The notes under the pieces were generated by a model, which saw only the letters and a list, made by a program, of their open reading frames with translations, made no database searches and was not told the DNA's origin. Both the position numbers and the translations under genes were made by a program. Positions 6,603 through 63,715 of a DNA stretch of 64,000 nucleotides are shown piece by piece. Within the stretch, counting starts at the first letter, position 1. Every line of letters begins with the position of its first letter. Origin of the DNA: Macrostomum lignano. Taxonomy: Eukaryota. The DNA is taken from the NCBI GenBank assembly GCA_002269645.1, contig NIVC01002326.1, positions 1 to 64,000 on the forward strand, in the 5' to 3' direction.

Positions 6603-6684
6603 CGACGAGGATGGGATTCGAACCCACGCGGGGAAACCCCAATGGATTAGCAGTCCATCGCCATAACCACTCGGCCACCTCGTC
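6603..6684 (-). tRNA. tRNA-Ser-GCT: tRNA-Ser (anticodon GCT)
   Basis: Minus strand reads GACGAGGTGGCCGAGTGGTTATGGCGATGGACTGCTAATCCATTGGGGTTTCCCCGCGTGGGTTCGAATCCCATCCTCGTCG. It has a 7-bp acceptor stem, A and B boxes, a GCT anticodon loop and a long variable arm, and is followed by T-runs (Pol III terminator). Confidence 0.97.
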
Positions 6685-6952
6685 TAACTCCGTGGGCTTA
6701 ATTTTTTAAAATATAACTTAAACGTAAAATATTTTTTTCTGCTGCGCAAGCCGGGACGAAGGATGCATAAAATACGATTTGATAGCTTTTGCTATTTTGA
6801 CAAATGGCACGTGGGAGCTCCAGCAAAAAGGCAAGGCTGAAGCAAAATCATTTAGAGCTGAAAAATTCTGTCACATCACACTCAGTCTCTTCTCTATATC
6901 TGGCCTGGCGTCACATTCCCGATCTGAACTGACCCTGCCCCTGCCCTGCTCG

Positions 6953-9900
6953 TCAAGCCTGCTCTTCGTTGCTGGATTCCCCAACCTTCTCCTTATCAGT
7001 CCGACTATTTGGTAAATCTTCTAGTGTTAATTCTTCAGCTGTATTGGTAGGCTGCTCAGATGCCGATGCCGGCTTATTGGGATCACAGAAGGCGCAGACA
7101 CCGCTGGTGCCCGCGTCGCCGATCGACTCAATGTCGCCGTTGCCAGCTTCGCCTTCCCGCCGAGTGTCTGGAACTGACGAGTCGGGTCTAGGCGACTGAT
7201 TAGTCAGCTTAGCAACCAACTGATTGTCGCCGTTGGATTGCGCAATTTGGGTGCCCTTCTCCATGCCCACCTGTACGGCATTGATTAGCCCGGAGACGAA
7301 CACCATACCCAGGAATATCCACACGGCCAAGCTGAACCTGTACACGTCTGATGAGTACGTCTGACCTGTGAGTGAGCAATAGCGAGTATTAACACCAGTT
7401 TTGAGTTTAGATGTTTGGACTAAAAATGTGAGACTGGACTGTTGGTGAACAAAAATACAAGCTTTACCTGGATCTGTTTTTACGGCTGCTATCTATGATT
7501 GGCTGCTATCTTTGATTGGCTGCTATCTTTGATTGGCTGCTATCTATGATTGGCTGCTATCTATGATTGGCTGCTATCTTTGATTGGCTGCTATCTATGA
7601 TTGGCTGCTATCTTTGATTGGCTGCTATCTTTGATTGGCTGCTATCTATGATTGGCTGCTATCTTTGATTGGCTGCTATCTATGATTGGCTGCTATCTTT
7701 AATAAGCTGCTATCTGCGATTGGCTGCTACCTTTGATTGGCTGCTATCTTTTATTGGCTGCTATCTATGATTGGCTGCTATCTTTGATTGGCTGCTATCT
7801 ATAATTGGCTGCTATCTTTGATTGGCTGCTATCTATGATTGGCTGCTATCTTTGATTGGCTGCTATCTTTAATAGGCTGCTATCTGCGATTGGCTGCTAT
7901 CTTTGATTGGCTGCTATCTTTGATTGGCTGCTATCTATGATTGGCTGCTATCTTTGATTGGCTGCTATCTATGATTGGCTGCTATCTTTGATAGGCTGCT
8001 ATCTGCGATTGGCTGCTATCTTTGATTGGCTGCTATCTATGATTGGCTGCTATCTTTGATTGGCTGCTATCTTTAATAGGCTGCTATCTGCGATTGGCTG
8101 CTATCTTTGATTGGCTGCTATCTTTGATTGGCTGCTATCTATGATTGGCTGCTATCTTTGATTGGCTGCTATCTATGATTGGCTGCTATCTTTGATAGGC
8201 TGCTATCTGCGATTGGCTGCTATCTTTGATTGGCTGCTATCTATGATTGGCTGCTATCTTTGATTGGCTGCTATCTATGATTGGCTGCTATCTGTTATTG
8301 GCTGCTATCTTTGATTAGCTGCTATCTGTGATTAGCAGCTATCTGTGACTGCCTGCCATCATAGAATAGAAATGGGTCTACAGTGCAATTTTTGTTGGCT
8401 AAGCATCAACCTTCATCTCTGATATCGCCGTGACATGCTGTGTGTAGTGCATTGTAAAATTACTTAGATTATAATTATTCAAATTACACACTAGTACAGA
8501 TGTACTTCTATTTCTGGTACATCTAAAGACCAGAAACAGAGCGCTGAGTGCAAGACTAAAAGAAACAGTTAAGAAAACCCTGGTGCACACCCAATGCATC
8601 CCTAAGCCTCTGTTTCATCAAATTCTCTGCAAGCCGCATTGAGTGAGAGAAAAAACCAATAATAAGAGTAGCCAAGAGGTCCCATCCCCAATTCAAGCCC
8701 GATATTCAGGGCTGGAGTGGCATCATCTCAAATAGTGTTAAGGTGTGTATTTACGACTCTCAAGCTGTCTTGTTTTGAACAGGCTGAATGATACAGGTAC
8801 AATTCTGATGTTTTCCGAAAATGAAGCTCCCAATTTCAATGAAAATTCCCACATGTGCATTTCCAGGGGTGCCATTCCCAGCTAGGAGTGCCATTACAGG
8901 GGCGCCATTCCCAGCTAGGGGTGCCATTCCCAGCTAGGGGTGCCATTCCCAGCTAGGGGTGCCATTCCCAGCTAGGGGTGCCATTCCCAGCTAGGGGTGC
9001 CATTCCCAGCTAGGGGTGCCATTCCCAGCTAGGGGTGCCATTCCCAGCTAGGGGTGCCATTCCCAGCTAGGGGTGCCATTCCCAGCTAGGGGTGCCATTC
9101 CCAGAGGTACCATTTCCAGGGGTGCCATTCCCAGCTAGGGTGCCATTCCAGGGGCGCCATTGAGCTAGGGGTGCCATTCCCAGAGGTAGGCCATTTCCAG
9201 GGGTGCCATTTACAAGGGTGCCATTTCCAGGGGTGCCATTTCCAGGGGTGCCATTTCCAGGGGTGCCATTTCCAGGGGTGCCATTTCCAGGGGTGCCATT
9301 TCCAGGGGTGCCGCCCACTTAGCTAGTATTCGGGCAGCTCTTGACCGCGCAGTCTCCTGACTTACCGGCAACATAGTCACCGAATCCTATGGTGGACAGG
9401 GTCACCAGGCTGTAGTACACGCCCACCTCGAGGCTCCAGCCCTCGGTGGCGGTAAACACAGAGGCTGGCACGATGAAGAATATCACCAAGCCGATCAGGG
9501 TGTACACCACTGAGGTGGCAGCTTTGGGAAGTCGGCCGCGGTTGCGCCAGCAGGACAACCGGTGGAGTCGCAGCTGGACGCCTTTCACTCGGTCGGCGAT
9601 GCCGCTGAGGAACACCGCCAGCATGGGGATGCCGATCAGGGCGTACACACAGCAGATGGACTGGCCAGCCGGGGTGGTCGGCGACAGGTTGCCGTAGCCG
9701 ATGGTGGTGATTACGGTGAGGCAGAAGAACACGGAGCCCGGATAGTCCCACTTAGACGGCGGCGCGGTCAGCGAACCGTTCTCGCCCAGACTGAAGCCGG
9801 TGCGAAAAGCTTTGCTAACCCGAGTGAGCAGTTGGCTTAGATTTTTCGAATCGATGCCGGGATTCTGGGCTAGAATGAGATTGGGAAGTAAACCAGCCAA

Positions 9901-12900
9901 TCAGCAATCGACCTTGACATGGAGTGAGGTGTCTGGCTGCCTAGTGTAAGGAAGGAAAGAACGGAATATACAAATCGAGGGAGGCATGGCAGAGTACTTT
10001 TGCACCAGCCAATCAGCGAGCGACCTTTACATGGAGTGAGGTGTCTGGCTGCCTAGTGTAAGGAAGGAAAGAACGGAATATACAAATCGAGGGAGGCATG
10101 GCAGAGTACTTTTGCACCAGCCAATCAGCGAGCGACCTTTACATGGAGTGAGGTGGCTGGCTGCATAGGGGAAGGAAGGAATGAATGGAATACACAGAAG
10201 AGAGGCATGGCAGAGTAGTTTTGCACCAGCCAATCAGAGAGCGACCTTGACATGAAGTGAGGTGGCTACAATTGGAAATGGCTGAAACTGAAAAGAATGG
10301 GTGGGAGCAATAAATTCACATTAACATAACTTACCAAGAAACTCATTGAGAGCTACCCTGACTCCATCGTGACTGGATGATTCGTTCGACTGCTCTAAAA
10401 ATTGAAAAAGCACTCCACCGAGAAGCAGGTAGGCAAAAACTAAAACGCCCATCATCAGCATGGTTCGCCAGTTCATGCTGCTGACAACTGGCTCTGCGGG
10501 TAATAGATGGGATTCTAAGATAGACGATGAGGCTGCAGCATAAGTCTAGATTCTAGATCCTAGATTCCAGAATAGAAACTAGACTCTAGAATAGAAACAA
10601 TGGAGCCTCTAGGATAGAAACTATGGAGACCATAGAAAAGAAACTAGAGACTGTAGGATAGAAACTATAGAGACTCTACGAAAGAAACTATAAAGACTAC
10701 AAACTATAAAACTAGGATAGAAACTATAGAGACACTAGGATAGAAACTATAGAGACTCTCGGATAGAAACTATAGAGACTCTAGGATAGAAACTAGGTAC
10801 ACTATAGTCTATAGTCAATAGAGACACTAGGTTAGAAACTAGAGACTATAGGATAGAAACTATAGAGACACTAGGATAGAAACTATAGATACACTAGGAA
10901 AGAAACTATAGATACACTAGGATAGAAACTATAGATACACTAGGATATAAACGATAGAGACACTAGGATAGAAACTATAGAGACACTAGGATAGAAACTA
11001 TAGAGACACTAGGATAGAAACTATAGAGACACTAGGATAGAAACTATAGATACACTAGGATAGAAACTATAGAGACACTAGGATAGAAACTATAGAGACA
11101 CTAGGATATAAACTATAGATACACTAGGATATAAACTATAGAGACACTAGGATATAAACTATAGATACACTAGGATAGAAACTATAGAGACACTAGGATA
11201 GAAACTATAGAGACACTAGGATAGAAACTATAGATACACTAGGATATAAACTATAGATACACTAGGATATAAACTATAGATACACTAGGATAGAAACTAT
11301 AGAGACACTAGGATAGAAACTATAGAGACACTAGGATAGAAACTATAGATACACTAGGATAGAAACTATAGAGACACTATGATAGAAACTATAGAGACAC
11401 TAGGATAGAAACTATAGAGACAGTAGGATAGAAACTATAGAGACACTAGGAAAGAAACTATAGAGACACTAGGATAGAAACTATAGAGACACTAGGATAG
11501 AAACTATAGAGACAGTAGGATAGAAACTATAGAGACACTAGGAAAGAAACTATAGAGACACTAGGATAGAAACTATAGATACACTAGGAAAGAAACTATA
11601 GATACACTAAGATAGAAACTATAGAGACACTAGGATATAAACTATAGATACACTAGGAGAGAAACTATAGAGACACTAGGATATAAACTATAGAGACACT
11701 AGGATAGAAACTATAGAGACACTAGGATAGAAACTATAGAGACAGTAGGATAGAAACTATAGAGACACTAGGAAAGAAACTATAGAGACACTAGGATAGA
11801 AACTATAGATACACTAGGAAAGAAACTATAGATACACTAAGATAGAAACTATAGAGACACTAGGATATAAACTATAGATACACTAGGAGAGAAACTATAG
11901 AGACACTAGGATATAAACTATAGAGACACTAGGATAGAAACTATAGAGACACTAGGATAGAAACTATAGAGACACTAGGATAGAAACTATAGAGACACTA
12001 GGATAGAAACTATAGATACACTAGGATAGAAACTATAGAGACACTATGATAGAAACTATAGAGACACTAGGATAGAAACTATAGAGACAGTAGGATAGAA
12101 ACTATAGAGACACTAGGAAAGAAACTATAGAGACACTAGGATAGAAACTATAGAGACACTAGGATAGAAACTATAGAGACAGTAGGATAGAAACTATAGA
12201 GACACTAGGAAAGAAACTATAGAGACACTAGGATAGAAACTATAGATACACTAGGAAAGAAACTATAGATACACTAAGATAGAAACTATAGAGACACTAG
12301 GATATAAACTATAGATACACTAGGAGAGAAACTATAGAGACACTAGGATATAAACTATAGATACACTAGGATAGAAACTATAGAGACACTAGGATAGAAA
12401 CTATAGAGACACTAGGTTAGAAACTATAGAGACACTAGGATAGAAACTATAGAGACTCTCGGATAGAAACTATAGAGACTCTAGGATAGAAACTAGGTAC
12501 ACTATAGTCTATAGTCAATAGAGACACTAGGATAGAAACTAGAGACTATAGGATAGAAACTATAGAGACACTAGGATAGAAACTATAGATACACTAGGAT
12601 AGAAACTATAGATACACTAGGATATAAACGATAGAGACACTAGGATAGAAACTATAGAGACACTAGGATAGAAACTATAGAGACACTAGGATAGAAAATA
12701 TAGAGACACTAGGATAGAAACTATAGAGACACTAGGATAGAAACTATAGATACACTAGGATAGAAACTATAGAGACACTAGGATAGAAACTATAGAGACA
12801 CTAGGATAGAAACTATAGATACACTAGGATAGAAACTATAGAGACACTAGGAAAGAAACTATAGAGACACTAGGATATAAACTATAGAGACACTAGGAAA

Positions 12901-15900
12901 GAAACTATAGAGACACTAGGATATAAACTATAGATACACTAGGATAGAAACTATAGAGACACTAGGAAAGAAACTATAGAGACACTAGGATAGAAACTAT
13001 AGATACACTAGGATAGAAACTATAGAGACACTAGGATATAAACTATAGATACACTAGGATAGAAACTATAGAGACACTAGGATAGAAACTATAGAGACAC
13101 TAGGATAGAAACTATAGATACACTAGGATAGAAACTATAGAGACACTAGGATAGAAACTATAGAGACACTAGGATAGAAACTATAGAGACAGTAGGATAG
13201 AAACTATAGAGACACTAGGAAAGAAACTATAGAGACACTAGGATAGAAACTATAGAGACACTAGGAAAGAAACTATAGAGACAGTAGGATATAAACTATA
13301 GAGACACTAGGAAAGAAACTATAGAGACCCTAGGATAGAAACTATAGATACACTAGGAAAGAAACTATAGATACACTAAGATAGAAACTATAGAGACACT
13401 AGGATATAAACTATAGATACACTAGGATAGAAACTATAGAGACACTAGGATATAAACTATAGAGACACTAGGATAGAAACTATAGAGACACTAGGATAGA
13501 AACTATAGAGACACTAGGATAGAAACTATAGAGACACTAGGATAGAAACTATAGAGACACTAGGATAGAAACTATAGAGACACTAGGATAGAAACTTTGG
13601 AGACACTAGGATAGAAACTATAGAGACAGTAGGAAAGAAACTATAGATACACTAGGATAGAAACTATAGATACACTAGGATAGAAACTATAGACACACTA
13701 GGATAGAAACTATAGATACACTAGGATAGAAACTATAGAGACACTAGGATAGAAACTATAGAGACACTAGGATATAAACTATAGATACACTAGGATAGAA
13801 ACTATAGAGACACTAGGATAGAAACTATAGAGACACTAGGAAAGAAACTATAGAGATACTAGGAAATAAACTATAGAGACACTAGGATAGAAAATATAGA
13901 GACAATAGTATATAAACTATAGATACACTAGGATGGAAAATATAGAGACACTAGGATAGAAACTATAGAGACACTAGGATAGAAACTATAGAGACACTAG
14001 GATATAAACTATAGAGACACTAGGATAGAAACTATAGAGACACTAGGATATAAACTATAGATACACTAGGATAGAAACTATAGAGACACTAGGATATAAA
14101 CTTTAGATACACTAGGATAGAAACTATAGATACACTAGGATAGAAACTATAGAGACACTAGGATAGAAACTATAGATACACTAGGATAGAAACTATAGAG
14201 ACACTAGGATATAAACTATAGATACACTAGGATAGAAACTATAGAGACACTAGGATAGAAACTATAGATACACTAGGATAGAAACTATAGATACACTGGG
14301 ATAGAAACTATAGATACACTAGGATAGAAACTATAGATACACTAGGATAGAAACTATAGAGACACTAGGATAGAAACTATAGATACACTAGGATAGAAAC
14401 TATAGAGACACTAGGATAGAAACTATAGATACACTAGGATATAAACTATAGATACACTAGGATAGAAACTATAGAGACACTAGGATAGAAACTATAGAGA
14501 CACTAGGATAGAAACTATAGAGACACTAGGATAGAAACTATGGAGACACTAGGATAGAAACTATAGAGACACTAGGATAGAAACTATAGAGACAGTAGGA
14601 TAGAAACTATAGAGACAGTAGGATAGAAACTATAGATTCACTAGGATAGAAACTATAGAGACACTAGGATAGAAACTATAGATACACTAGGATAGAAACT
14701 ATAGAGACACTAGGATAGAAACTATAGAGACACTAGGATAGAAACTATAGAGACACTAGGATAGAAACTTTGGAGACACTAGGAAAGAAACTATAGAGAC
14801 ACTAGGATAGAAACTATAGAGACACTAGGATAGAAACTATAGAGACACTAGGATATAAACTATAGAGACACTAGGATAGAAACTATAGAGACACTAGGAT
14901 ATAAACTATAGATACACTAGGATAGAAACTATAGAGACACTAGGATATAAACTATAGATACACTAGGATAGAAACTATAGATACACTAGGATAGAAACTA
15001 TAGATACACTAGGATATAAACTATAGAGACACTAGGATATAAACTATAGATACACTAGGATAGAAACTATAGAGACACTAGGATAGAAACTATAGATACA
15101 CTAGGATAGAAACTATAGAGACACTAGGATAGACACTATAGATACACTAGGATAGAAACTATAGATACACTAGGATATAAACTATAGAGACACTAGGATA
15201 GAAACTATAGATACACTAGGATAGAAACTATAGATACACTAGGATATAAACTATAGAGACACTAGGATATAAACTATAGAGACACTAGGATAGAAACTAT
15301 AGAGACACTAGGATAGAAACTATAGATACACTAGGATAGAAACTATAGATACACTAGGATAGAAACTATAGAGACACTAGGATATAAACTATAGATACAC
15401 TAGGATAGAAACTATAGAGACACTAGGATAGAAACTATAGATACACTAGGATAGAAACTATAGAGACACTAGGATAGAAACTATAGAGACACTAGGATAT
15501 AAACTATAGATACACTAGGATATAAACTATAGAGACACTAGGATATAAACTATAGATACACTAGGATAGAAACTATAGATACACTAGGATAGAAACTATA
15601 GAGACACTAGGATAGAAACTATAGATACACTAGGATATAAACTATAGATACACTAGGATATAAACTATAGAGACACTAGGATAGAAACTATAGAGACACT
15701 AGGATAGAAACTATAGAGACACTAGGATAGAAACTATGGAGACACTAGGATAGAAACTATAGAGACACTAGGATAGAAACTATAGAGACAGTAGGATAGA
15801 AACTATAGAGACAGTAGGATAGAAACTATAGATTCACTAGGATAGAAACTATAGAGACACTAGGATAGAAACTATAGATACACTAGGATAGAAACTATAG

Positions 15901-18900
15901 ATACACTAGGATATAAACTATAGAGACACTAGGATAGAAACTATAGAGACACTAGGATAGAAACTATAGAGACACTAGGATAGAAACTATAGAGACACTA
16001 GGATAGAAACTATAGAGACACTAGGATAGAAACTATAGAGACACTAGGATATAAACTATAGAGACACTAGGATAGAAACTATAGAGACACTAGGATATAA
16101 ACTATAGATACACTAGGATAGAAACTATAGAGACACTAGGATATAAACTATAGATACACTAGGATAGAAACTATAGATACACTAGGATAGAAACTATAGA
16201 TACACTAGGATATAAACTATAGAGACACTAGGATATAAACTATAGATACACTAGGATAGAAACTATAGAGACACTAGGATAGAAACTATAGATACACTAG
16301 GATAGAAACTATAGAGACACTAGGATAGACACTATAGATACACTAGGATAGAAACTATAGATACACTAGGATATAAACTATAGAGACACTAGGATAGAAA
16401 CTATAGATACACTAGGATAGAAACTATAGATACACTAGGATATAAACTATAGAGACACTAGGATATAAACTATAGAGACACTAGGATAGAAACTATAGAG
16501 ACACTAGGATAGAAACTATAGATACACTAGGATAGAAACTATAGATACACTAGGATAGAAACTATAGAGACACTAGGATATAAACTATAGATACACTAGG
16601 ATAGAAACTATAGAGACACTAGGATAGAAACTATAGATACACTAGGATAGAAACTATAGAGACACTAGGATAGAAACTATAGAGACACTAGGATATAAAC
16701 TATAGATACACTAGGATATAAACTATAGAGACACTAGGATATAAACTATAGATACACTAGGATAGAAAATATAGAGACACTAGGATATAAACTATAGAGA
16801 CACTAGGATATAAACTATAGATACACTAGGAAAGAAACTATAGATACACTAGGATATAAACTATAGATACACTAGGATATAAACTATAGAGACACTAGGA
16901 TATAAACTATAGATACACTAGGATAGAAAATATAGAGACACTAGGATATAAACTATAGAGACACTAGGATAGAAACTATAGAGACACTAGGATAGAAACT
17001 ATAGATACACTAGGATAGAAACTATAGAGACACTAGGATATAAACTATAGATACACTAGGAAAGAAACTATAGATACACTAGGATAGAAACTATAGAGAC
17101 ACTAGGATATAAACTATAGAGACACTAGGATATAAACTATAGATACACTAGGATATAAACTATAGAGACACTAGGATATAAACTATAGAGACACTAGGAT
17201 AGAAACTATAGAGACACTAGGATAGAAACTATAGATACACTAGGATAGAAACTATAGATACACTAGGATAGAAACTATAGAGACACTAGGATATAAACTA
17301 TAGATACACTAGGATAGAAACTATAGAGACACTAGGATAGAAACTATAGATACACTAGGATAGAAACTATAGAGACACTAGGATAGAAACTATAGAGACA
17401 CTAGGATATAAACTATAGATACACTAGGATATAAACTATAGAGACACTAGGATATAAACTATAGATACACTAGGATAGAAACTATAGATACACTAGGATA
17501 GAAACTATAGAGACACTAGGATAGAAACTATAGATACACTAGGATATAAACTATAGATACACTAGGATATAAACTATAGAGACACTAGGATAGAAACTAT
17601 AGAGACACTAGGATAGAAACTATAGATACACTAGGATAGAAACTATAGAGACACTAGGATATAAACTATAGATACACTAGGATAGAAACTATAGATACAC
17701 TAGGATAGAAACTATAGATACACTAGGATATAAACTATAGAGACACTAGGATATAAACTATAGATACACTAGGATAGAAACTATAGAGACACTAGGATAG
17801 AAACTATAGATACACTAGGATAGAAACTATAGAGACACTAGGATAGACACTATAGATACACTAGGATAGAAACTATAGATACACTAGGATATAAACTATA
17901 GAGACACTAGGATAGAAACTATAGATACACTAGGATAGAAACTATAGATACACTAGGATATAAACTATAGAGACACTAGGATATAAACTATAGAGACACT
18001 AGGATAGAAACTATAGAGACACTAGGATAGAAACTATAGATACACTAGGATAGAAACTATAGATACACTAGGATAGAAACTATAGAGACACTAGGATATA
18101 AACTATAGATACACTAGGATAGAAACTATAGAGACACTAGGATAGAAACTATAGATACACTAGGATAGAAACTATAGAGACACTAGGATAGAAACTATAG
18201 AGACACTAGGATAAACTATAGATACACTAGGATATAAACTATAGAGACACTAGGATATAAACTATAGATACACTAGGATAGAAACTATAGATACACTAGG
18301 ATAGAAACTATAGAGACACTAGGATAGAAACTATAGATACACTAGGATATAAACTATAGATACACTAGGATATAAACTATAGAGACACTAGGATAGAAAC
18401 TATAGAGACACTAGGATAGAAACTATAGAGACACTAGGATAGAAACTATAGAGACACTAGGATAGAAACTATAGATACACTAGGATAGAAACTATAGAGA
18501 CACTAGGATAGAAACTATAGATACACTAGGATAGAAACTATAGATACACTAGGATATAAACTATAGAGACACTAGGATATAAACTATAGAGACACTAGGA
18601 TAGAAACTATAGAGACACTAGGATAGAAACTATAGATACACTAGGATAGAAACTATAGATACACTAGGATAGAAACTATAGAGACACTAGGATATAAACT
18701 ATAGATACACTAGGATAGAAACTATAGAGACACTAGGATAGAAACTATAGATACACTAGGATAGAAACTATAGAGACACTAGGATAGAAACTATAGAGAC
18801 ACTAGGATATAAACTATAGATACACTAGGATATAAACTATAGAGACACTAGGATATAAACTATAGATACACTAGGATAGAAAATATAGAGACACTAGGAT

Positions 18901-24099: not shown

Positions 24100-24330
24100 T
24101 CTGATTGGCTGGGGGAGACTGGGTTGAGATTGGAGCTTAGTTCCAATTGGCTGGCGGGGAGACTGGGTTGAAATTGGAGCTCAGTTTTGATTAGCTGGCG
24201 GAGAATGGGTTAGGAATGGAGCTCAGTTTTGATTAGCTGGTGGGAAGACAGTGAATTGAGCTCAGTTTCGATTGGCTGGCGGAGAATGGGTTGGGATTGG
24301 AGCTCAGCTCTGATTGGCTGATGGGATGAA
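24100..24330. repeat. Degenerate repeat of about 45-60 bp containing GATTGGCTG
   Basis: Recurring GGAGCTCAGTTTTGATT(A/G)GCTGG..TGGGTT. Confidence 0.7.
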
Positions 24331-24654: not shown

Positions 24655-24885
24655 TGACTGGCTGTAAGACAGCTCAGCTGAACTCTGATTGGCTGACACT
24701 GGAGATGAGTTATGACAGCTGAGCTTTGATTGGCTGACACTGGAGATGGATTGGGACAGCTGAGCTCTGATTGGCTGACACTGGAGGTTGGGTGGGACAG
24801 CTGAGCTCTGATTGGCTGATGTTTGAGATGGGATATGACAGCTGAGCTCTGATTGGCTGACACTGGAGATGGGGCGGGACAGCCG
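24655..24885. repeat. 41-bp minisatellite (ACAGCTGAGCTCTGATTGGCTGACACTGGAGATGG...)
   Basis: GATTGGCTGA at 24687, 24728 and 24769. Confidence 0.88.
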
Positions 24886-42818: not shown

Positions 42819-42924
42819 TGTTTGCTTCTACTGCCGCCGGCGCTTTACGGTTGGAATGGAATTGTTGTGATGCTTGGTATTGGAAACTAGGAATTAGTAG
42901 CAATTATAGACATCCTATAAAATA

Positions 42925-45560: not shown

Positions 45561-45659
45561 GGCTGCTTGCCTGCTTGCTGGGCATGCAGTAATATTCGTA
45601 GCAGTAGTAAATAGCGAATGTGCCAGAAATTCAAATACCAACACTAAAAATAGACTAGC

Positions 45660-51109: not shown

Positions 51110-51134
51110 GGCTGTCTGCAACGGGTTTTTAACA

Positions 51135-51375
51135 TTTCGATACATATCGGCTGTATAGATGCGGCTATCCTTGAAAGACTATTTTCGATACATATCGGCT
51201 ATCCTGAAAGACTACTTTCGATACATATCGGCTATACACATGCGGCTATCCTGAAAGACTATTTTCGATAAATATCGGCTATACACGTGCGGCTATCCTG
51301 AAATATTATTTTCGATACATATCGGCTATACACGTGCGGCTATCCTGAAAGAGCATTTTCGATACATATCGGCTT
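51135..51375. repeat. About 48-bp repeat (TTTCGATACATATCGGCTATACACGTGCGGCTATCCTGAAAG...)
   Basis: About 5 copies immediately upstream of CERS. Confidence 0.85.
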
Positions 51376-52007
51376 CATTAACATCTACGCCTTTGAGGAA
51401 GAAACTGAAAAAAAGAACTAAAAACAAACCAGACTGTTCGAAAATGTTTAATTAACTATATTTCCTAACAAAAAAGATATCCTATCTATTTAACTTTAAA
51501 TCAATCAAAAGAAAGTTAGGGGATGGTGTATTAGCACACAGTTATTCTGATACTACTTCGTAATCGTATGACTGATTGATAAGATAAAAGTTAAGACAAA
51601 TCGACGAGAACTGCAACGACAAACTAAAAAAATGGTTAAATAAAGCTTAAACAGTCTGATTGAGCAGTTACTTAATGAATATAATCGAAGAATTTAAAAT
51701 TAAGAAAAAACTATTTAATATAACAACTTTTTTATTTAAAGATAAATAATTATGATAAAGCATGTTCCGCAAACCGGGGAAGAGAGTATTAACAACTCAT
51801 TTAATGGCTATTAATTTGATGGATAATATCCCTATTAATTTCGTCACAACTAGAGGCATAATATGGCTTTGTAATTAAAAATATATAAAAATCATTTACA
51901 AGATTACATGTAAGCTTCCAATTTCGACTTCTTTAATCAGAATAAGTTGCGTCTTAAAAATACATGACATTACTTGGACAGACAAATCAGACGTCATGAT
52001 TAAACAA

Positions 52008-52282
52008 GACAGACAAAGACACAGGCTTGACAGTAGACAGACAAAGAAACAGGCTTGACAGTAGACAGACAATGAAGACACAGGCTTGACAGTAGACAGA
52101 CAGTGAAGACACAGGCTTGACAGTAGACAGACAGTGAAGACACAGGCTTGACAGTAGACAGACAAAGACACAGGCTTGACAGTAGACAGACAAAGACACA
52201 GGCTTGACAGTAGACAGACAAAGACACAGGCTTGACAGTAGACAGACAAGGAAGACACAGGCTTGACAGTAGACAGACAGCA
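52008..52282. repeat. 28-30-bp minisatellite (GACAGACAAAGACACAGGCTTGACAGTA)n
   Basis: About 9 copies; intergenic. Confidence 0.9.
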
Positions 52283-52364: not shown

Positions 52365-54619
52365 TTAATTATCCTTCTTTCGACTATCGCTAGTACGAAG
52401 AGTAGTAGCAGCCTCATCGGAGACTGACAGGTCTTTACTAAGCCGGCGCAATCGCAGCAGCACCAGATGAGGCACCAGAGCTACGCACAGGTTAATAGCC
52501 AGAAATATGGCTCTGGGCCCGGCCTGCGACGGGACCCGCCTAGCAAACGGAGTGCGCAGGTGAAATGGCGCTAAAGTGTAGGAGAACTGGCCCTGAGCAA
52601 CGGCGCCTGCGGCAACTAGCGACCAGTCTAACAGGGCTCGTATATTTAGCCCGGTTGCCGGGGCCAGCAGAGCCCTAGCAACGGCTAGCAGGAACGGTGC
52701 TAGAAAATAGGCGTAAGTGAGCAGCTGGAATAGTGGAAATCTTTCCGCGTCACCGCTGTAGGGATCAACATCAACGGCCAGGTAGCGGCACACCGGGTGA
52801 TTGCAGCCGACGGCAACTACAGCTCGAAGCAGGCAGATACAAGCGGTTGCTATGCAGGCCAAGGCGAGACAGGCGTCGGCTAAACCGGGGAAGCGTCTGG
52901 CATGATTGGCATTGAATATTGAGACATTATGAACTTTTAAACTTTTGATTGTTTATAGGATGCACCTCCCCTGATTTAGCTCATCCCCTAGAGGGAGTGC
53001 AGTTCGAGTGAATATAGAATATTCTCGAGGCTAGGGTCTAAAATATGAGGCTTGATAAGAGGGGCGCCAGTCAGTCAGGTGATGTACATCTTTTGTGGTC
53101 CTGAATGTACGATGAATACCTACAACCACGAAGAGGGATTGTGTGTGGCATACGTCTGTTTATCGTATAAGAGCCCGCTACTTTTATCAGATGTCACTCA
53201 TCTGACTCATCTGAATATTTTGAGAATTGGAGCAACATACGAGGCTCGCGCCTTTATTGGTATCAAGGATGGCAAGGACAGTGATTACAACGGAGTGCGT
53301 ACAACCACGAACAGTGCAATACCATAGACATTTTTATGATACTGTTGCACTAGGCCATAGATATATAATCATATTGTACCATAGACATTCTTCAAAAGCT
53401 ACACCAGAGTGAGCGATGGGGTTTGAAGGCGGAGTCCCCACCCATTATTACCATAGACTATTTTTTGTTTTCTTTAAAGAAATTTCCGGGAAGTTAATGG
53501 AGTTTGGGCCACAATGGTCTATGGCTATTAAGAGGCACAGATATTGGCCATCCATGGCAAGAAGGACATTTGTACAATAGTTTGTTATAACTTTTGCTTC
53601 AGTTCGTTTTTATTCTAGAATAGAATAGTCTATTGTTTCAAGTTGAGTCTTCGCCCTCAGCCACGCCCCAGACCGGCACCCAGACTGAATAACGTCTATG
53701 GCACAATATCAATGGACATAGATGAAGGAATTCTATGGAAAGAATAATTAGAATAATGCCTACAGTTGTCATGCCTGTGTTTAGTAGCGCTGGCTGATGT
53801 AGATTTCAACTGTTTTTAGCGTCTTCTTCATAAAATAGCTTATACATTCTTCTTTGCTACTTAAACTAAAAGTAGTAGAGAAACTGTTAAACCAATTATA
53901 TGCGTGTGACCAATCTTAGTTATGATAAGAAAGCAGCTCATTTCATGTTCCGCCTCTGCTATGATAGGAAGCAAAAAGGGTTAATTTGCTAATTTCACCT
54001 ACCTGGCACGCAGGCCAGCCAGACAGGCGGGCCGCAGCCCAGTGTCCGACCAGTCGGCGGTTCGCAGAGCCCTGTGCAGCACGTACAGCGGGTAGAGTGC
54101 AAACGGTACATTAAGCAGCAAAGCCGGCCTAAGCTGATGAGGCCCGCAGGCTGCGCCGCATAGCAACACAATAATACTATTCATCATAGAGCCGAACCAG
54201 TACAGACTGGTGTGCCTGTACTCGCCATTCCAGTAGATAGCGGTAACCATGTACAGGTACTGGGCGTAGTGCACCACACCGTCCCAGTAGTTGATGTACA
54301 ATCCGTGCGAAGTTTTCAAATACGACTCGCCCTTCTCCAGATAGAAATCGGCAAATCCGTCAACAAAGCCGTCCATGTCCATGGAGATCACCATGTCGAT
54401 GGCGCAGCCGAAGCAGCCAAGCGCGAACGGGAAATACAGAGGCTCAATAGGCTTGCCTTTGTCCATGCCCAGCCAGATTATGAAGCAGATGGCGGACAGC
54501 ACGGCTACTCCGATCGCTAAGATGACGGGCTCGGTCAGCTCCGAGCGGAAGTGATTGCATATGAAACTGATCGGCACCGCGCTCACTGAGCACATTAACA
54601 CCAGGAGGGGCACGTGCAT
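52365..54619 (-). CDS. TM6SF1: Transmembrane 6 superfamily member 1/2-like (two EXPERA domains), about 382 aa; exons 54003-54619 and 52365-52896
   Basis: GESYLKTSHGLYINYWDGVVHY, LYWFGS, DPY..FPLFQLLTY and GAVAQGQFSY..HLRTP match TM6SF motifs. The phase-2 GT-AG junction gives 1149 nt in frame. Confidence 0.88.
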
Positions 54620-54698
54620 GCTGGCGGCTTGCTGGCTTCTTGCTGCAAATATTAGTATGGGAAAGCGGCTGTGAATGCATACTGCCTATCTTGTCTAT

Positions 54699-55741: not shown

Positions 55742-58700
55742 CTACAGTTCGAGCCCAAGCCTAGTAACCAGCTGAGTAACTCGGGCCACAGACTGCGGAT
55801 TCTCGTGCGCCCGAAGGCCTTCAAGCGCCGTTGACCAGTCGGGCTGCAGAACGTGCGGTCCAACAGTTGGCTGACGCAGAAGAGCCAGCAGTTCTCCTAG
55901 TCGGGTGAGCAGGCATTGAATCTCTGCGTAGCCGCAGTCAGGCGACGGTGGGCAGGACTCGGCGTAGGTCCGAATCTTAGTCAGCACTAGCAGGCACCGG
56001 TGCATATTGTCCTAGCGGGAATAAAGCCATGGAAGCTTGATTAGCCCCGCACCTGAATGGCTCCTTGATTAGCCCGGAATCATGACCCACTGCTGAGCCC
56101 GGAATCATGACCCACTGCTGACGCCCGGAATCATGACCCACTGCTGACGCCCGGAATCATGACCCACTGCTGACGCCCGGAATCATGACCCACTGCTGAC
56201 GCCCGGAATCATGACCCACTGCTGACGCCCGGAATCATGACCCACTGCTGAGCCCGGAATCATGACCCACTGCAGACGCCCGGAATCATGACCCACTGCT
56301 GAGCCCGGAATCATGACCCACTGCTGAGCCCGGAATCATGATCCACTGCTGAGCCCGGAATCATGACCCTAGCTTTCGGTCTGCCTGCAGCTCTATATGC
56401 CCAACCTCAACAGCACCAGTAGCACCAGGGCTCACCTGTACAGAGCAGGCCACCTTGGCCAGGCTGGTGGCCAGACAGCACCAAAGTCGGGGCGGCAGAG
56501 CCGACCAGCCGAGTTTCGCAGCCAGAATCTCGTAGGCCAACAGTTCCAGGCACTCGTACAGTCGGGCGATGCGCTGAGCCTCGCTTTCGCCGGCCACCTC
56601 GCCAGAATCCGCGCCGTCCAACTCGTCATTGTCGGCGCGTCGTCTGCTGCAGGCTTCGCCGAAGCCCCACAATAAAGTGAGGTACATCGGCAGGGCCCGG
56701 CCAATTGCTCGCTTCCACTGGGCCGCGGCGAAGTCCAGGCACTCGTCCAGCTGGTCCAGCAGCGCCCTCGGCCGCCGATCAATCAGTCGGCGAGCCAGCA
56801 GGGCCAACCGTCTGGCCACGGCGTCGGCGTGTCGATGTCCGCCGAACACCAGCAGGCTGCGCTCGGCCAGAGCGGGCAGCATCCGGCTCAAACAGTCGCC
56901 GCAATCGCCGCCGCCGCCGACATCGTCATTGGCAGCGGAGCTGTAGACTTCGTCTGCTGTCAGTAGCAAAATCAAATTGGCGAATTCGTCCAATAGGCGG
57001 AGACTGGCAGAGCAGGCGGCGGCAACAAGCGGCCCACCTGTAGTTTGCTGCTGTTGCCGCTGCTGCTGCTGCCGCTGCTGGCCTGACAGATAGTCGAATA
57101 GCACTTCAAGCTTAGCGGCAGTGTCGCCTGCGCCGGAGGTGTCACGAGTCAGGAACAGAGCGTAAGGCTGAATCTGTTGTAAGGTTAGAGAGTAGTGTAG
57201 CGTGTTTCAGTTACAGAGGCGGGGGGGGGCTGTGTGCGAGTGAGAGGCATCTCGCGAGAGGCGAGAGACACAACCGGCGAGAGGCATTACTGCCCATTCT
57301 ACCCTGAGCAGGCACACAAGCGCACAGATACAGGCCCGCGAACAGCGGCCCTAACCTTATTTTTTATCGTTAGGCATGTACGCTTCATTGTGTCTTGGGG
57401 TGGCCTACAAGGACTTTGATTGCACGAACAGATTCAAGCCGAGATTCCAATTTAGCCCCAAATTAATTTGACTGCACTTGGAATCGAGCCCAGGCCGCTG
57501 CGCCAGACCACTGCATTAAATAAGGTTTTATCACAGACAATTTTATCACAGACTCGTAAAGTCGACAAACAGATGAAGCCACCTAAGACCCAACACATGC
57601 CAGCTTCATGTGATCGTCATATAAAAGCTGAATTCAAGGCACAGAGTGTACACGCCTGACGATTAGAAAGTCAGGACTAGACCACTGTACACCCTGTGTG
57701 AGCGTGTGTTTGAGTGCGTGCCCTCACTCACATTAGGCAACACTCACATTAGGCAACACTCACATTAGGCAACACTCACATTAGGCAACACTCACATTAG
57801 GCAACACTCACATTAGGCAACACTCACATTAGGCAACACTCACATTAGGCAACACTCACATTAGGCAGCAGCTCTCCGCTTGAGGTGTTTTTCAATTCAA
57901 TTTTTGCTTTTGACTCAAAAAAATTTTTTTACTTGTCACTCGTTATAAAATACATAGCTTGGAGGTCGCTTTTTCGCTGTGCGCCTCCCGCGCGTTGCTC
58001 GCCTTTCACATTAGGCATCACTCACATTAGGCAACACTCACATTAGGCAACAATCACATTAGGCAACACTCACATTAGGCAACACTCATATTAGGCAACA
58101 CTCACATTAGCAGGGAGTTGCGCAATAAAATCCGGACCCAGCGATTCCAACCGATTCAACTCGTACAGAGCAGACAGACAGGGCAAATCGATGAGGCAGT
58201 GCAGCATCTCCAGGCTGCAGGCGGGCGACAGGCAAGCTGGCAGGATCTTATCGGCAAACATGTCAGCAAAGGTAGACGGCCACCTGGCTAGCAGTTTGAT
58301 GAAGCTGGGAAAATGGCGGACAGTGATTCCATGCTCCCAGCATAATGGTTCGGCATTATCGGCAGTAAACCGTAGCAATTCTAAGCAGAACTCTTGCGAA
58401 TTAATCAGCCGATCGATGCAGACTGTGTACAGCGGCGCGAGGAATTGCGGAGCGTCTTTGCCAACGCTGGCGTGGTGAGTTAATAAAAATCTTGCCAGTG
58501 TCACGTGCAGCGTTGCCGACTGTGGAATGGGTAAATTCACATTAGCAAATTACCACTGTTATTTTTTACATAAAATACTAACACTGAATTTTAAGTCGGC
58601 CTGGTCTGCTTGTGCCATAATCGCAGAGAAGATAGATTTGGCCGCTGAAAATTTTGCTGCTCCCTACTGGCCAGTCACTTTAGCCGCTCCCTACTGTCCG

Positions 58701-61134
58701 GTCACTTTAGCCGCTCCCTACTGGCCGGTCACTTTAGCCGCTCCCTACTGTCCGGTCACTTTAGCCGCTCCCTACTGTCCGGTCACTTTAGCCGCTCCCT
58801 ACTGTCCGGTCACTTTAGCCGCTCCCTACTGTCCGGTCACTTTAGCCGCTCCCTACTGGCCGTTCCCTACTGGCCGCTCCCTACTATTCGGTCACTTTAG
58901 CCGCTTCCTAACTGTCCGACAACTTTGGCTTATTATTCAATGCAACAAACCTGCGCAGGCGGAGGTGCCGGTCCAAGCAGCTGGGCGTAGAGACCCTCCA
59001 TCCGGGTGAAATACCTGGCCAGCAGGCCGGAGTCCAGGCGGCACAACAGGCAGGCCAATTCGGCAGTCTCATTGAGCAGGGCGGGCATAACGGAATCGGC
59101 GTCGGCTTGAGCAGCCGGTTTTCTCTCGCACTGATCCAGCAGCTGCCAGCACAGGCTGTGCAAGTCCGATTTCACGGCCAGCCCGGTGCGGGCGACGCTG
59201 GCCGGGCTGCCGCATTCCAGCAGGCAGAGCAGCCAGCGTCGGAGAACGGAGAAAGCGGCGTGGCTCAACTCCAAGTCGGGGCTCCAGTGCGGGAACTGTG
59301 GGGAAAAAGGCCACGTCAGAGCGCCAAGACTACTGTTAGTAACATTTCTTGCGTGTCCGATAGAAAGCACCAACAATTGGAATTTGTTGAATAAGGCAAA
59401 CCAAATAAATTGATAATATCCCTTCCCCACACTCCCCAATTACCTGATGTGCGCAGGTGAGAAACTGCTGACCAACCTGCTGACCAACTGGCTGCCCGTC
59501 AATCTCCGTCACTGCAGCCGCTGAGGCAGCGCTGACGCCGCCGACAGCCGATGCAGGCGAGCCGCCGCCGCCGCCGCCGAACTCGCCGGAGAGCCAGGCG
59601 CGGCCAGGCCAGCGAAGGATGTCAACCAAGGCGCACAGGCAGGCGTGCAGGCGATCGTCAGATAGCAACAACGATGACGCTTGCTGCTGCTGCTTTTGCT
59701 GGCGACAAGCGTCGGCTAGGCGAGTGAGAAAGGCCAAGCACTGTAGCCGCCTCGCCGGGCTGGCCCGCTCGCCGCCACCCTGCGGACTTGACAGCTCACG
59801 AGTCGCCTGCCCAATTAGCGATTCGGCTGAGGCTGCGAAATTGAATAGGCGTTTCATTGTGTAGGTGCAGTTAGGCGCAAATAGATTCCCTAAAACGTAC
59901 ACGAGGCAAAGCTAGGGGGCGCGAGCTAGAGCCCAGCAGCAGAGTGGGCACAGCTACAGAAGGGGCGCCAGCTACAGTACAGATGGGGGCACGGCTACAG
60001 TACAGAGGGGGCGCCAGCTACAGTACAGAGGGGGCGCCAGCTACAGTACAGAGGGGGCGCAAGCTATAGAGGGCGCCAGCTACAGTACAGAGAGGGCACA
60101 GCTACAGTACACAGGGGCACAGCTACAGGGGGAGCGCCGCGCGGCGGCTACGGAGGGGGCGCCAGCTACAGTACAGAGGGGGCGCCAGCTATAGAGAGGG
60201 CGCCAGCTACAGTACAGAGAGGGCACAGCTACAGTACACAGGGGGCACAGCTACAGGGGGAGCGTCGCGCGGCGGCTACGGAGGGGGCGCCAGCTACAGA
60301 GGGGGCGCCAGCTACAGAGGGGGCGCCAGCTATAGAGGGGGCACTAGCTACAGAGGGGGCGCCAGCTATAGAGGGGGCGCCAGCTACAGAGGGGGCGCCA
60401 GCTACAGAGGGGGCGCCAGCTACAGAGGGGCGCCAGCTACAGAGGGGGCACTAGCTACAGAGGGGGCGCCAGCTATAGAGGGGGCGCCAGCTACAGAGGG
60501 GGCGCCAGCTACAGAGGGGCGCCAGCTACAGAGGGGGCACTAGCTACAGAGGGGGCGCCAGCTATAGAGGGGGCGCCAGCTACAGAGGGGGCGCCAGCTA
60601 CAGAGGGGGCGCCAGCTACAGAGGCCCCTGCGACTGTTGCTGGAGGATGGCTGCCGTGACTAAATTAATGAAAATCTCACCAGCGGTCAGGCAGTCGGAG
60701 GAGCGCAGCAGGCCCAGGAGTTCGCCAGCCGCGGCGTCCAAAGCGGCTGACATCGCCTGCCGATGAGCCTCAAAAAAAGCTGACCGCCGGCCATCGAAAT
60801 AATAATCAATTAAAGTGTCAAGCAAAGCTCCAGCGGCCTCTTTGGCAAAGATGAAGCGTTGCTGCTGCTGTTTCGGCTGCCCAGCAACAGTTGCTACCCG
60901 GGCAATGAGACGCACAGTCATGCGGAGCTGGTTAGGCGCCAGGTCGCACAGGCCGGCCACGGCGTACCGAGCGCGCAGCCGGTGCAGCAGGCTGTTCAAA
61001 TCTGGCAGATCAACGCCAGTGCCGTCGGCAGCGAATTCGAATGCCTCATCGTGCCGGCTGAGCAGCAATTCGAGTTCGCGAAGGCTGACCGATTCGGCCT
61101 GACGAATCTGGGCCTCGTAGGCTGTGCGGTTCAT
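55742..61134 (-). CDS. AP5Z1: AP-5 complex subunit zeta-1 (SPG48), about 869 aa; exons 60681-61134, 59444-59832, 58951-59295, 58106-58519, 56436-57173, 55742-56011
   Basis: FPSFIKLLARWP..LEMLHCLIDLPCLSA, VTEIDG, LWGFGE..LYECLELLAYE, LATSLAKVA..Q|DNMHRCLLVLTKIR and TRLGELLALLRQPTV parallel remembered AP5Z1 motifs. The model is in frame with GT-AG introns; the exon 1/2 junction is the least certain. Confidence 0.85.
56085..56370. repeat. 25-26-bp minisatellite (CCCGGAATCATGACCCACTGCTGA(C)G)n
   Basis: AP5Z1 intron 5. Confidence 0.93.
57665..57722 (+). mobile_element. SINE-like interspersed repeat fragment (copy 2)
   Basis: ACCACTGTACACCCTGTGTGAGCGTGTGTTTGAGTGC matches the reverse complement of about 42928-42968. 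Confidence 0.45.
57724..58112. repeat. Two blocks (57724-57868 and about 58005-58112) of the 16-bp unit CACTCACATTAGGCAA
   Basis: On the minus strand the unit is the exon 4 / intron 4 junction of AP5Z1 (TAAT|GTGAGT). Confidence 0.92.
58655..58905. repeat. 27-bp minisatellite (GCCGCTCCCTACTGTCCGGTCACTTTA)n
   Basis: AP5Z1 intron 3. Confidence 0.93.
59945..60625. repeat. 17-18-bp (and 23-bp) G-rich minisatellite (GAGGGGGCGCCAGCTACA)n
   Basis: AP5Z1 intron 1. Confidence 0.92.
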
Positions 61135-61234
61135 GCTGCTGGCTTAGCCTATGTTGGCTCAGTGGCGCTGCTGGAATATTAGAAACAGCGGGCTGGTGCG
61201 ATTGAGCCTGCATGTTTGTAATCCAGTCAGTACT

Positions 61235-62000
61235 CTGTCCATCCTGTCCTGTTTACTGCCCATCCTGTCCTGTTTACTGCCTATCCTGCCCTATTTACAG
61301 TCTATCCTGTCCTGTTTACAGTCTATCCTGCCCTGTTTACTGCCTATCCTGCCCTATTTACAGTCTATCCTGCCCTGTTTACAGTCTATCCTGCCCTGTT
61401 TACTGCCTATCCTGCCCTATTTACAGTCTATCCTGCCCTGTTTACAGTCTATCCTGCCCTGTTTACAGTCTATCCTGCCCTATTTACAGTCTATCCTGCC
61501 CTGTTTACAGTCTATCCTGCCCTGTTTACTGCCTATCCTGCCCTATTTACAGTCTATCCTGCCCTGTTTACAGTCTATCCTGCCCTGTTTACTGCCTATC
61601 CTGCCCTATTTACAGTCCATCCTGTCCTGTTTACAGTCTATCCTGTCCTGTTTACAGTCTATCCTGGCCTGTTTACAGTCCATCCTGTCCTGTTTACAGT
61701 CTATCCTGTCCTGTTTACAGTCTATCCTGCCCTGTTTACAGTCCATCCTGTCCTGTTTACAGTCTATCCTGTCCTGTTTACAGTCTATCCTGTCCTGTTT
61801 ACAGTCTATCCTGCCCTGTTTACTGCCTATCCTGTCCTGTTTACAGTCTATCCTGCCCTGTTTACAGTCCATCCTGTCCTGTTTACAGTCTATCCTGTCC
61901 TGTTTACAGTCTATCCTGTCCTGTTTACAGTCTATCCTGTCCTGTTTACAGTCTATCCTGTCCTGTTTACAGTCCATCCTGTCCTGTTTACTGTCTACTC
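61235..62000. repeat. 21-bp minisatellite (CTATCCTG(T/C)CCTGTTTACAGT)n
   Basis: Period 21; intergenic between the hnRNP gene and AP5Z1. Confidence 0.96.
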
Positions 62001-62756
62001 AGAGTCTGTCCTGAACAAATGGCAAAACAACTACAATGAGACATCAGTGGAGCAGAACGCTGAGGTGCAATTTGCGGAACGCAGTCGTTTTTGTATTTCT
62101 GCTTTTTGTCAGACGAGTGTTTCAACAACAAAAAGCTGAACAATAGAAAAAAAAGCGCAAGAAACGGTTGCGAAGCGAGCTGAAGGAGTGAAATTTAGAC
62201 AGCTAGCTACTAGAGTGAGAACAAAGGTGCCGGCGTACCTTAATGAAATTACTAAATTTCCTGTATAGCAGAAATGATGCAGAGTTCGCTAATTTAGGTA
62301 TTAATTTAACTTACCCACAAGATTAATTTAGACAAAGGACTGAAGCTGATATAAAAACACTGAATAATACATGAACAAAAAATAAGCAGGCTAAATATGG
62401 ATAAGCTGGAAAATTGCCAGAACAGACAGACAAGACCTGTACACACAACGGTAGTGGGGATAAATTGTGCAACATTAGAATAGATAAATAAATATTGGTT
62501 ATTAATAGCTTACCCTTAGCTTGTCTACCCTGAACACACAACTGTAATTACCGGGCAAAGTCGGCTACTATAATTTGGGACAATTGAATTATGAATATTG
62601 TTAAACTAAAAGCATTACAAACAGTTACAACAACAATTAGGGAATTGTATGATTATGTAACAAAAGAAAAGTTATATTAGAATTGCAAGTTTTACAAAAA
62701 GAAATTGTTTTGCTTTTTTAAGTCTACGTCACCGTGGCTGCGTGAGCACGAGTCAC

Positions 62757-63715
62757 TCAGTAGCGGAGGAAAATCTCAATGTAGCGGGTGCCTGGAATGT
62801 TTTTTTGTTTAAAGTGCACAATGTACGCGAGTAGATCTGAGCCTATTAAATCCATGTATTAATCTGTACAGAAAGTCTGAAGTCAACACTGCTGAACCAG
62901 ACGTAAAAATTCAACACAAAACTGTCACGTGTCACGTGACTGCTCAAAATTTATCTCATCACTGCTCAAACCCTAATACCCGTCACTGCTCAAACCCTAA
63001 CACCCACCAATGCTCAAACCCTAAAACCCGTCACTGCTCAAACCCTAACACCCATGTCAGTGCTCAAACCCTAACACCCGCCAATGCTCAAACCCTAATA
63101 CCCGTCACTGCTCAAACCCTAACACCCGCCAATGCTCAAACCCTAATACCCGTCACTGCTCAAACCCTAACACCCACCAATGCTCAAACCCTAATACCCG
63201 TCACTGCTCAAACCCTAACACCCATGTCACTGCTCAAACCCTAACACCCATGTCACTGCTCAAACCCTAACACCCGCCAATGCTCAAACCCTAATACCCG
63301 TCACTGCTCAAACCCTAACACCCACCAATGCTCAAACCCTAATACCCGTCACTGCTCAAACCCTAGCACCCGCCAATGCTCAAATCCTAATGCCCGTCAC
63401 TGCTCAAACCCTAACACCCACCAATGCTCAAACCCTAACACCCACCAATGCTCAAACCCTAATACCCGTCACTGCTCAAATCTTAGCCCATCACTGCTCA
63501 AACCCTAACGCAATCCCAGCTAGCTCACCAAGGCAATCGCCGTTGCGAGCCAGAGCTTTCTGCTGCTCGTCGGCAGTATTAAAGAACACATCCGCTTCGC
63601 CGGAGCTCCGGCCGCTTGCGTCTGGCAGCACATTGACTCTGGCCGGCTGCAGCGGATAGAAAAAGTTGACAATCTCCCGCTCGCCGGCTGACCAGGGCAG
63701 GCCGCGCAGGTGCAG
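62757..63715 (-). CDS. hnRNP F/H / GRSF1-family RNA-binding protein, final qRRM (5' part off-window); exons 63529-63715 and 62757-62791
   Basis: LHLRGLPWSAGEREIVNFFYPL..SGEADVFF..|GTRYIEIFLRY* is a typical quasi-RRM. The phase-1 junction is GTGAGC / ttccAG. Confidence 0.88.
62955..63510. repeat. 24-bp minisatellite (CA(C/A)TGCTCAAACCCTAA(T/C)ACCC..)
   Basis: Last intron of the hnRNP gene; one CCCTAA per unit. Confidence 0.93.

Follow-up and report, generated by a model that had tools for sequence, protein, structure and literature searches.

A cluster of minus-strand genes in Macrostomum lignano with spliced-leader-type 5' ends, probably transcribed in one or more operons

Scaffold NIVC01002326.1 of the flatworm Macrostomum lignano raises the question of whether its closely spaced minus-strand genes are transcribed together and then separated by spliced-leader (SL) trans-splicing. 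We analyzed positions 1 to 64,000 of this scaffold (64,000 nucleotides [nt], here called the window), in which eight protein genes were found, all on the minus strand: in the order of transcription, an hnRNP F/H-like gene, AP5Z1, TM6SF, CERS, zf-MYND (MYND), POLR1B, DCAF8, and a K2P channel gene. An initial annotation, made from the sequence alone, had proposed a trans-spliced operon from 3' splice sites without partner exons and from short distances between genes. We conclude, with a probability of about 0.75, that this is a cluster of SL trans-spliced genes that are transcribed polycistronically, in one operon or in several. RNA polymerase II would read on through consecutive genes of the same strand, and each upstream mRNA would be cleaved and polyadenylated. 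The 35-nt SL, which ends in ATG, would be joined to an unpaired 3' splice site located between a few and some tens of nt before the open reading frame (ORF), giving the downstream mRNA a capped 5' end. The spacers, swollen by minisatellites, would be transcribed and then discarded.

This type of processing has been described for the species. A single 35-nt SL is present on about 30% of M. lignano genes, with [T/C]TNCAG as the acceptor motif, and about 15% of the genes are assigned to operons of 2 to 9 genes, 75% of which are two-gene operons, with a maximum of nine genes (PMC8629364). Assignment to an operon was based on location on the same strand, the SL on the downstream gene, and a spacer of <1 kb after subtraction of repeats, with a mode near 100 bp, and operon members are enriched in conserved genes (PMC8629364). 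Flatworm SLs all end in ATG (PMC12582326). The M. lignano SL has the sequence CGGTCTCTTACTGCGAAGACTCAATTTATTGCATG and the 3' end TTATTGCATG; no SL RNA gene was found within the window.

The origin of the sequence was established by exact-protein look-ups, which identified NIVC01002326.1 as a 92,562-bp scaffold of M. lignano assembly Mlig_3_7. Window positions 39982 to 64000 were identical to this record base for base, at the record's own coordinates, in all stretches compared, and the intronless CERS ORF (49982 to 51145, minus strand) has 99% identity to an M. lignano protein (PAA58823.1). Two other scaffolds, NIVC01002327.1 and NIVC01000127.1, are paralogous or allelic and carry the same genes with the gene order kept. 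All GenBank gene calls from 21738 to 64640 are on the minus strand, with no plus-strand call in this part of the record. For the Mlig_3_7 annotation, RNA-seq "transcriptional units" were divided into genes wherever SL-read peaks and poly(A) sites provided evidence for a boundary (PMC5730564). The hnRNP F/H and AP5Z1 genes have no GenBank annotation on NIVC01002326.1, although both look intact, and an exact-protein look-up showed that the window copy of AP5Z1 is absent from the protein collection; one likely cause is a submission filter that discarded transcripts overlapping repeat annotations. No individual description of the locus was found in the literature, and its genes are not listed in the accessible parts of published supplementary tables.

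The sequences at the gene starts were examined for acceptors. AG is present at every coordinate at which the initial annotation had placed an acceptor, and four of these sites are strong (AP5Z1, TM6SF, CERS, and DCAF8), marked by a branch-like CTAAY element or a core of the YTNCAG type; the sites proposed for MYND and POLR1B look misplaced. With the splice junction marked by a slash, the candidate SL acceptor of AP5Z1 is TTTCTAATATTCCAG/ (AG at 61172 to 61171), and the acceptors are TACTAATATTTGCAG/ for TM6SF (AG at 54644 to 54643, exon start at 54642), GTTGCAG/ for CERS (AG at 51117 to 51116, exon start at 51115), and TACTAAC..TTTTGCAG/, also given as GTACTAACAACATGTACTTTTGCAG/, for DCAF8 (AG at 30778 to 30777). 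For POLR1B, TACTAATTCCTAG/ at 42888 to 42887 is a better candidate than the previously proposed TAAAG/ at 42844 to 42843. A loose motif, CTAAY(3-18)YAG, occurred 199 times in the window, compared to 199 times expected. From about 45 non-repeat minus-strand sites, the presence of the acceptor motif at four of the seven genes appears to exceed chance, as a rough estimate and not a test.

The annotated coding sequences (CDSs) of four genes begin at or next to these acceptors. The DCAF8 CDS starts at 30776, the first base past the AG, with GAA and not ATG, and the same is seen in both paralogues. The TM6SF CDS starts at 54640, which is the first in-frame codon past the exon start, in an ORF open up to 54685, and the 5'-partial CERS CDS ("AMLADLL") starts at 51112, 3 nt past the exon start, in an ORF open to 51178. 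The 5'-partial MYND CDS starts at 45581 in a frame open to 45668, and the annotated 5' end of the gene (45583 to 45581) lies 4 nt upstream of the AG proposed earlier (45579 to 45578). Since the ORF is open further upstream at all four genes, it is the transcript models that end there. Indirectly, these 5'-partial CDSs point to boundaries set by SL reads, of which they would be the expected pattern. SL addition at AP5Z1 and POLR1B is putative, with support for POLR1B from the naming of its unit. A rule by which the annotated start equals the exon start minus 1 fits CERS, TM6SF, and MYND and was refuted by the exact DCAF8 start.

A frame check showed that the terminal ATG of the SL would be in frame for CERS (M-T-A-M-L-A..) and for DCAF8, where it would add 28 codons ahead of the first genomic ATG; the leader may supply the start codon of DCAF8. 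At AP5Z1, TM6SF, and MYND, the SL ATG would begin upstream ORFs that are short (4, 16, and 37 codons, respectively). For the CERS ORF from the upstream ATG at 51145, no recorded gene product was found, and neither the CERS forms starting from the ATG at 51109 or from the SL ATG nor the MYND form starting from its own ATG is in the protein collection.

Traces resembling the leader were also found in the reference sequence itself. The TM6SF acceptor has the sequence ..ATATTTGCAG/CAAG in the window and ..ATATTGCATG/CAAG and ..ATATTTCATG/CAAG in the two paralogues; nine bases of the ATATTGCATG copy are identical to the SL 3' end. This junction is located at 54643 to 54652 in the window, appears as TATTGCATG/ (..GCATG/) at 6584 to 6600 of fetched locus L001, and appears as CATG/ at about 4155 to 4170 of fetched locus L003. 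The indels at the junction are the only two in a 3.2-kb alignment with the first paralogue. A DCAF8 paralogue (fetched locus L007, 22985 to 22992) has ..TTGCTG/ in place of ..TTGCAG/. At MYND, where the 5'-end region has an identical sequence in the three scaffolds, all three copies carry TTACTGCATG/CC directly upstream (window positions 45583 to 45590), resembling the SL 3' end; only a few percent of random windows score as high as this SL-like stretch, which is not unique. Removing T45584 yields a consensus CTGCAG/ acceptor with an exon start at 45582, matching the annotated start, and T45584 may therefore be an inserted base. The Pilon polishing of Mlig_3_7 relied on RNA-seq reads that had been aligned with STAR (PMC5730564). 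It is probable that SL-bearing reads drew the consensus towards the leader at the TM6SF, DCAF8, and MYND junctions, and if these bases are such a polishing artifact, SL reads exist at those junctions. Alternatively, the acceptor changes could be real mutations in redundant gene copies, and in the case of MYND, TGCATG in the genome itself may have looked like an SL read. Leader-derived bases, if that is what they are, would turn AG into ATG or TG and would mislead sequence-only surveys of splice sites in Mlig_3_7.

We additionally examined the spacing of the genes. The raw stop-to-start gaps are 1.58 kb (hnRNP to AP5Z1), 1.10 kb (AP5Z1 to TM6SF), 1.25 kb (TM6SF to CERS), 1.52 kb (MYND to POLR1B), and 0.96 kb (POLR1B to DCAF8), in agreement with the five sizes given in the initial annotation, which omitted the CERS-to-MYND gap of 4.4 kb (83% satellite). 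After subtraction of the repeats detected by Tandem Repeats Finder (TRF), the six stop-to-next-start distances are 823, 562, 761, 743, 869, and 492 nt, so that every gap from hnRNP to DCAF8 is <1 kb. These values are conservative, because the 3' untranslated regions are counted in and only TRF repeats were removed, with no masking of transposons. From hnRNP to DCAF8, the seven genes all run in the minus direction, uninterrupted by any gene call on the plus strand, and no Pfam-supported plus-strand ORF was found in this interval. Candidate AATAAA or ATTAAA signals lie 89 to 240 non-repeat nt before the 5' ends of TM6SF, CERS, MYND, and DCAF8; neither hexamer occurs in the hnRNP-AP5Z1 spacer, where a 21-mer array (61237 to 61997) stops 64 nt upstream of the AP5Z1 acceptor. 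The distance from DCAF8 to K2P is 14.5 kb, with about 2.6 kb of non-repeat sequence. Since this exceeds the 1-kb limit, K2P is probably not in the same unit as the cluster, and its membership in the operon is not supported. The tRNA gene that had been counted with the cluster is an RNA polymerase III gene, unrelated to an RNA polymerase II operon.

The naming of the GenBank proteins bears on polycistrony. MYND is Mlig032808g1 and POLR1B is Mlig032808g2, under one transcriptional unit prefix, and in the legend of the annotation authors, unit Mlig030697.1 holds the trans-spliced genes.g1 and.g2. The prefix shared by these two unrelated genes means that a single assembled unit was later divided between them. 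They are the only pair with unit-naming support for polycistrony; for the other pairs we infer cotranscription, as well as the extent of any single unit. The paralogous POLR1B copies are g2 and g5 of prefix 033648, a numbering that would be compatible with units of three genes (MYND, POLR1B, and perhaps DCAF8). Reading the "Mlig" numbers as ranks of unit length, with a long TM6SF unit, was contradicted by the gene lengths in a published table.

Several observations weigh against trans-spliced operons at this locus. The RNA evidence is second-hand, taken from annotation coordinates and locus tags. Neither candidate acceptor of POLR1B matches [T/C]TNCAG, and an in-frame TAG at 42830 to 42828 makes the CDS start of this gene uninformative about the 5' end of its transcript. 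The MYND 5' end follows TG and not AG in the assembly as it is. Adjacent same-strand genes can be merged by StringTie and TACO through read-through transcription. The unit prefixes also differ along the cluster (005957g4 for TM6SF, 023378g3 and 025192g1 for the CERS paralogues, and 032808 for MYND), and these genes were not joined by the authors. The raw gaps of 1 to 4.4 kb have room for promoters, and about 60% of the trans-spliced M. lignano genes have no operon assigned to them (PMC8629364).

The most far-reaching version of the operon reading is a single operon of about 38 kb that comprises all seven genes, with hnRNP first and DCAF8 last, and is transcribed from one promoter upstream of hnRNP, outside the window. 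The uninterrupted run of seven genes with repeat-adjusted gaps under 1 kb is consistent with it, as are the published operons of up to nine genes and the acceptor or annotated 5' end near the ORF of each downstream gene. In addition, at four of the six downstream genes the unique sequence from a minisatellite to the acceptor measures 44 to 74 nt, so that a core promoter would hardly fit there. However, the differing unit prefixes and the 4.4-kb gap between CERS and MYND argue against a single unit, and the promoter region lies outside the window. The annotation authors noted that transcriptional units tend to break in repeat-rich spacers (PMC8629364). We therefore regard one operon spanning all seven genes as possible and yet unlikely.

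Independent monocistronic genes, each with its own promoter in the spacer, are less probable again. The SL would then only trim outrons, and the MYND/POLR1B unit would result from read-through or a merge during assembly. The frequency of trans-spliced genes outside operons and the length of the raw spacers fit this explanation, CCAAT-box-like GCCAATCAG arrays are present inside the cluster, and stricter rules for flatworm operons use gaps of ≤300 bp (PMC12582326). In contrast, MYND and POLR1B are named in accordance with what the authors define as a precursor carrying several trans-splice sites, and the unique sequence directly upstream of several acceptors is very short. A run of eight genes on the same strand would be expected about once in 128 cases, by an arithmetic that assumes independent orientation.

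That the acceptors belong to cis-spliced introns after noncoding first exons, with no leader added, is very improbable: from the DNA an upstream noncoding exon is possible for AP5Z1 or POLR1B, and many SL acceptors of parasitic flatworms are also used in cis (PMC12582326), but the RNA-seq-based models of DCAF8, TM6SF, CERS, and MYND end at the acceptor, where an upstream exon would lengthen both transcript and ORF, and the acceptor changes in the paralogues copy the SL 3' end.

Trans-spliced genes in one or more operons thus remain our preferred explanation. The operon proposed in the initial annotation is supported as to its kind by a flatworm host with documented SLs and operons, by the four 5'-partial CDSs, by the g1/g2 naming of MYND and POLR1B, and by the repeat-adjusted gaps, and its claim that all protein genes and the tRNA are on the minus strand was correct. 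It had counted nine protein genes, of which we found eight. Nothing supports the functional link that it drew between RNA metabolism and lipid or endolysosomal genes; conserved genes are simply overrepresented in the operons of this species. The features that it described are real and its explanation is essentially of the right kind, but they are a textbook feature of M. lignano.

The coordinates of the genes are given in Table 1. A ninth protein gene was not found: ORFs at 21.7 to 25.1 kb and 1 to 7 kb had no Pfam match above the curated cutoff, with two weak matches, both below the threshold. The hnRNP F/H-like gene extends upstream past the window to at least 64638, with a quasi-RRM exon at about 63520 to 63757 and a last exon ending at the stop codon at 62757 to 62759; its PDB matches are the quasi-RRMs of hnRNP F, hnRNP H, and GRSF1. 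The AP5Z1 model starts with an exon at 61170 and an ATG at 61134, contains five GT-AG introns, and ends at the stop codon at 55742 to 55744; its 868 amino acids (aa) equal the length of the annotated paralogue on NIVC01000127.1. The two-exon TM6SF model is an exact match to PAA58831.1 ("Mlig005957g4, partial") and has a PDB match to TM6SF1 (E = 2e-54), and zf-MYND is an exact match to PAA58829.1 ("Mlig032808g1, partial"). For POLR1B, automatic fewest-introns models were wrong, and a homology-curated model of nine exons gave exactly the annotated protein of 1149 aa (PAA58828.1, "Mlig032808g2"). The last intron of POLR1B has a GC-AG donor (CAG/GCGAGT at 32934), and the model with this donor gives the annotated protein exactly. 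The DCAF8 exon search did not return M. lignano proteins, though the gene is annotated. K2P has acceptor-like CTGCAG/ and CCGCAG/ shortly 5' of its ATG. Ser/Ala-rich ORFs that overlap one another at 1400 to 2223 on the minus strand (one of 192 aa, beginning with the ATG at 1978, and one of 117 aa upstream) have no Pfam match and may represent a further minus-strand gene.

Table 1. Positions of the genes and of one intergenic spacer in the window, in the order of transcription
Feature	Positions	Strand	Details
hnRNP F/H-like, 3' part	62757-64000	-	RRM_1 match; ORFs in fetched locus L004
hnRNP-AP5Z1 spacer	61173-62756	-	1584 nt, 48% tandem repeat
AP5Z1	55742-61172	-	SPG48 and TPR_AP5Z1_C Pfam matches; gene model
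TM6SF	52365-54644	-	Exon 1, 54642-54003; exon 2, 52896-52365
CERS, intronless ceramide synthase	49982-51117	-	TLC domain; 376-aa 5'-partial CDS
zf-MYND	44339-45590	-	Exon 1, 45581-45085 (CDS); exon 2, 44618-44339
POLR1B (RNA polymerase I second-largest subunit)	31738-42888	-	ATG at 42818; stop at 31738-31740
DCAF8	25113-30778	-	Annotated CDS 30776-25113, 705 aa (fetched locus L006); tblastn with DCAF8 homologues
K2P (two-pore-domain K+ channel)	6953-10545	-	Ion_trans_2 match
tRNA-Ser(GCT)	6603-6684	-	

Tandem repeats make up 51% of the window, compared to 13% genome-wide, and 39 to 83% of each spacer. The largest array, between DCAF8 and K2P (10711 to 21665), is 11 kb in length and consists of about 477 copies of the 23-mer ACTAGGATAGAAACTATAGAGAC with 94% matches. 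Copy numbers vary among the paralogous scaffolds; the 28-mer array at 52007 to 52279 occupies about 1.1 kb in fetched locus L003. The minisatellite arrays next to the acceptors are part of the outron or the intercistronic spacer itself. At five of seven genes, minisatellites of at least 150 nt end 25 to 74 nt upstream of the putative acceptor (array ends at 61237, 54700, 51162, 45659, and 10560), which has a P value of about 2e-4 given a background of about 10% per site. The CCAAT-box-like 9-mer GCCAATCAG occurs 21 times, compared to 0.6 expected, in five otherwise different arrays at 9896 to 10237 (+), 24101 to 24318 (-), 24685 to 24857 (-), 25433 to 25567 (-), and 44645 to 45022 (+). These arrays, with periods of 41, 42, and 112 nt, are located in introns of K2P and of MYND and near the 3' end of DCAF8, and the 9-mer could represent a repeat family or clustered NF-Y-type sites.

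A unit of about 38 kb from hnRNP to DCAF8, with every spacer carrying a kilobase-scale minisatellite that ends 44 to 74 nt before the trans-splice acceptor, is doubtful. If it is real, operon processing would tolerate long transcribed satellite arrays or even use them, for spacing, for pausing, or as internal CCAAT-bearing regulatory modules. The finding otherwise adds little, as SL-type 5' ends of four genes and the MYND/POLR1B unit are already part of the GenBank record. The cluster is an ordinary, already annotated example of SL trans-splicing and operons that have been described genome-wide on the same assembly. As a stretch of up to seven conserved genes, the cluster lends itself to tests of the extent of operons and of transcription through satellite-filled spacers.

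The cluster can be compared to the polycistrons of other animals. Parasitic flatworms (Schistosoma and cestodes) share with M. lignano an SL that ends in ATG and can supply the start codon, as well as the lack of SL specialization (PMC12582326). The candidate operons of parasitic flatworms have gaps of ≤300 bp (PMC12582326), whereas the gaps of this cluster pass only under the repeat-adjusted 1-kb rule. The operons of Caenorhabditis elegans are likewise polycistronic RNA polymerase II units of mostly housekeeping genes, in which 3' end formation is coupled to SL trans-splicing; they comprise 2 to 8 genes, with a dedicated SL2 on the downstream genes and spacers of about 100 nt (PMC8629364, PMC12582326). 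In contrast, M. lignano has a single SL, and the raw spacers here are 0.96 to 4.4 kb and filled with minisatellites, so that the cluster shows neither the specialized SL2 nor the spacer of about 100 nt that define the C. elegans type. Functionally it is comparable to a C. elegans operon, without belonging to that subtype. The closest comparison is with the published operons of M. lignano itself (Wudarski et al. 2017, PMC5730564; Ustyantsev and Berezikov 2021, PMC8629364), which come from the same species and assembly and likewise consist of conserved genes on the same strand. The cluster resembles them in its YTNCAG-type acceptors just before the ORF, in spacers of <1 kb after subtraction of repeats, and in the g1/g2 naming of MYND and POLR1B. 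There is no difference in kind between them, and with up to seven genes the cluster would rank among the larger of the published operons.

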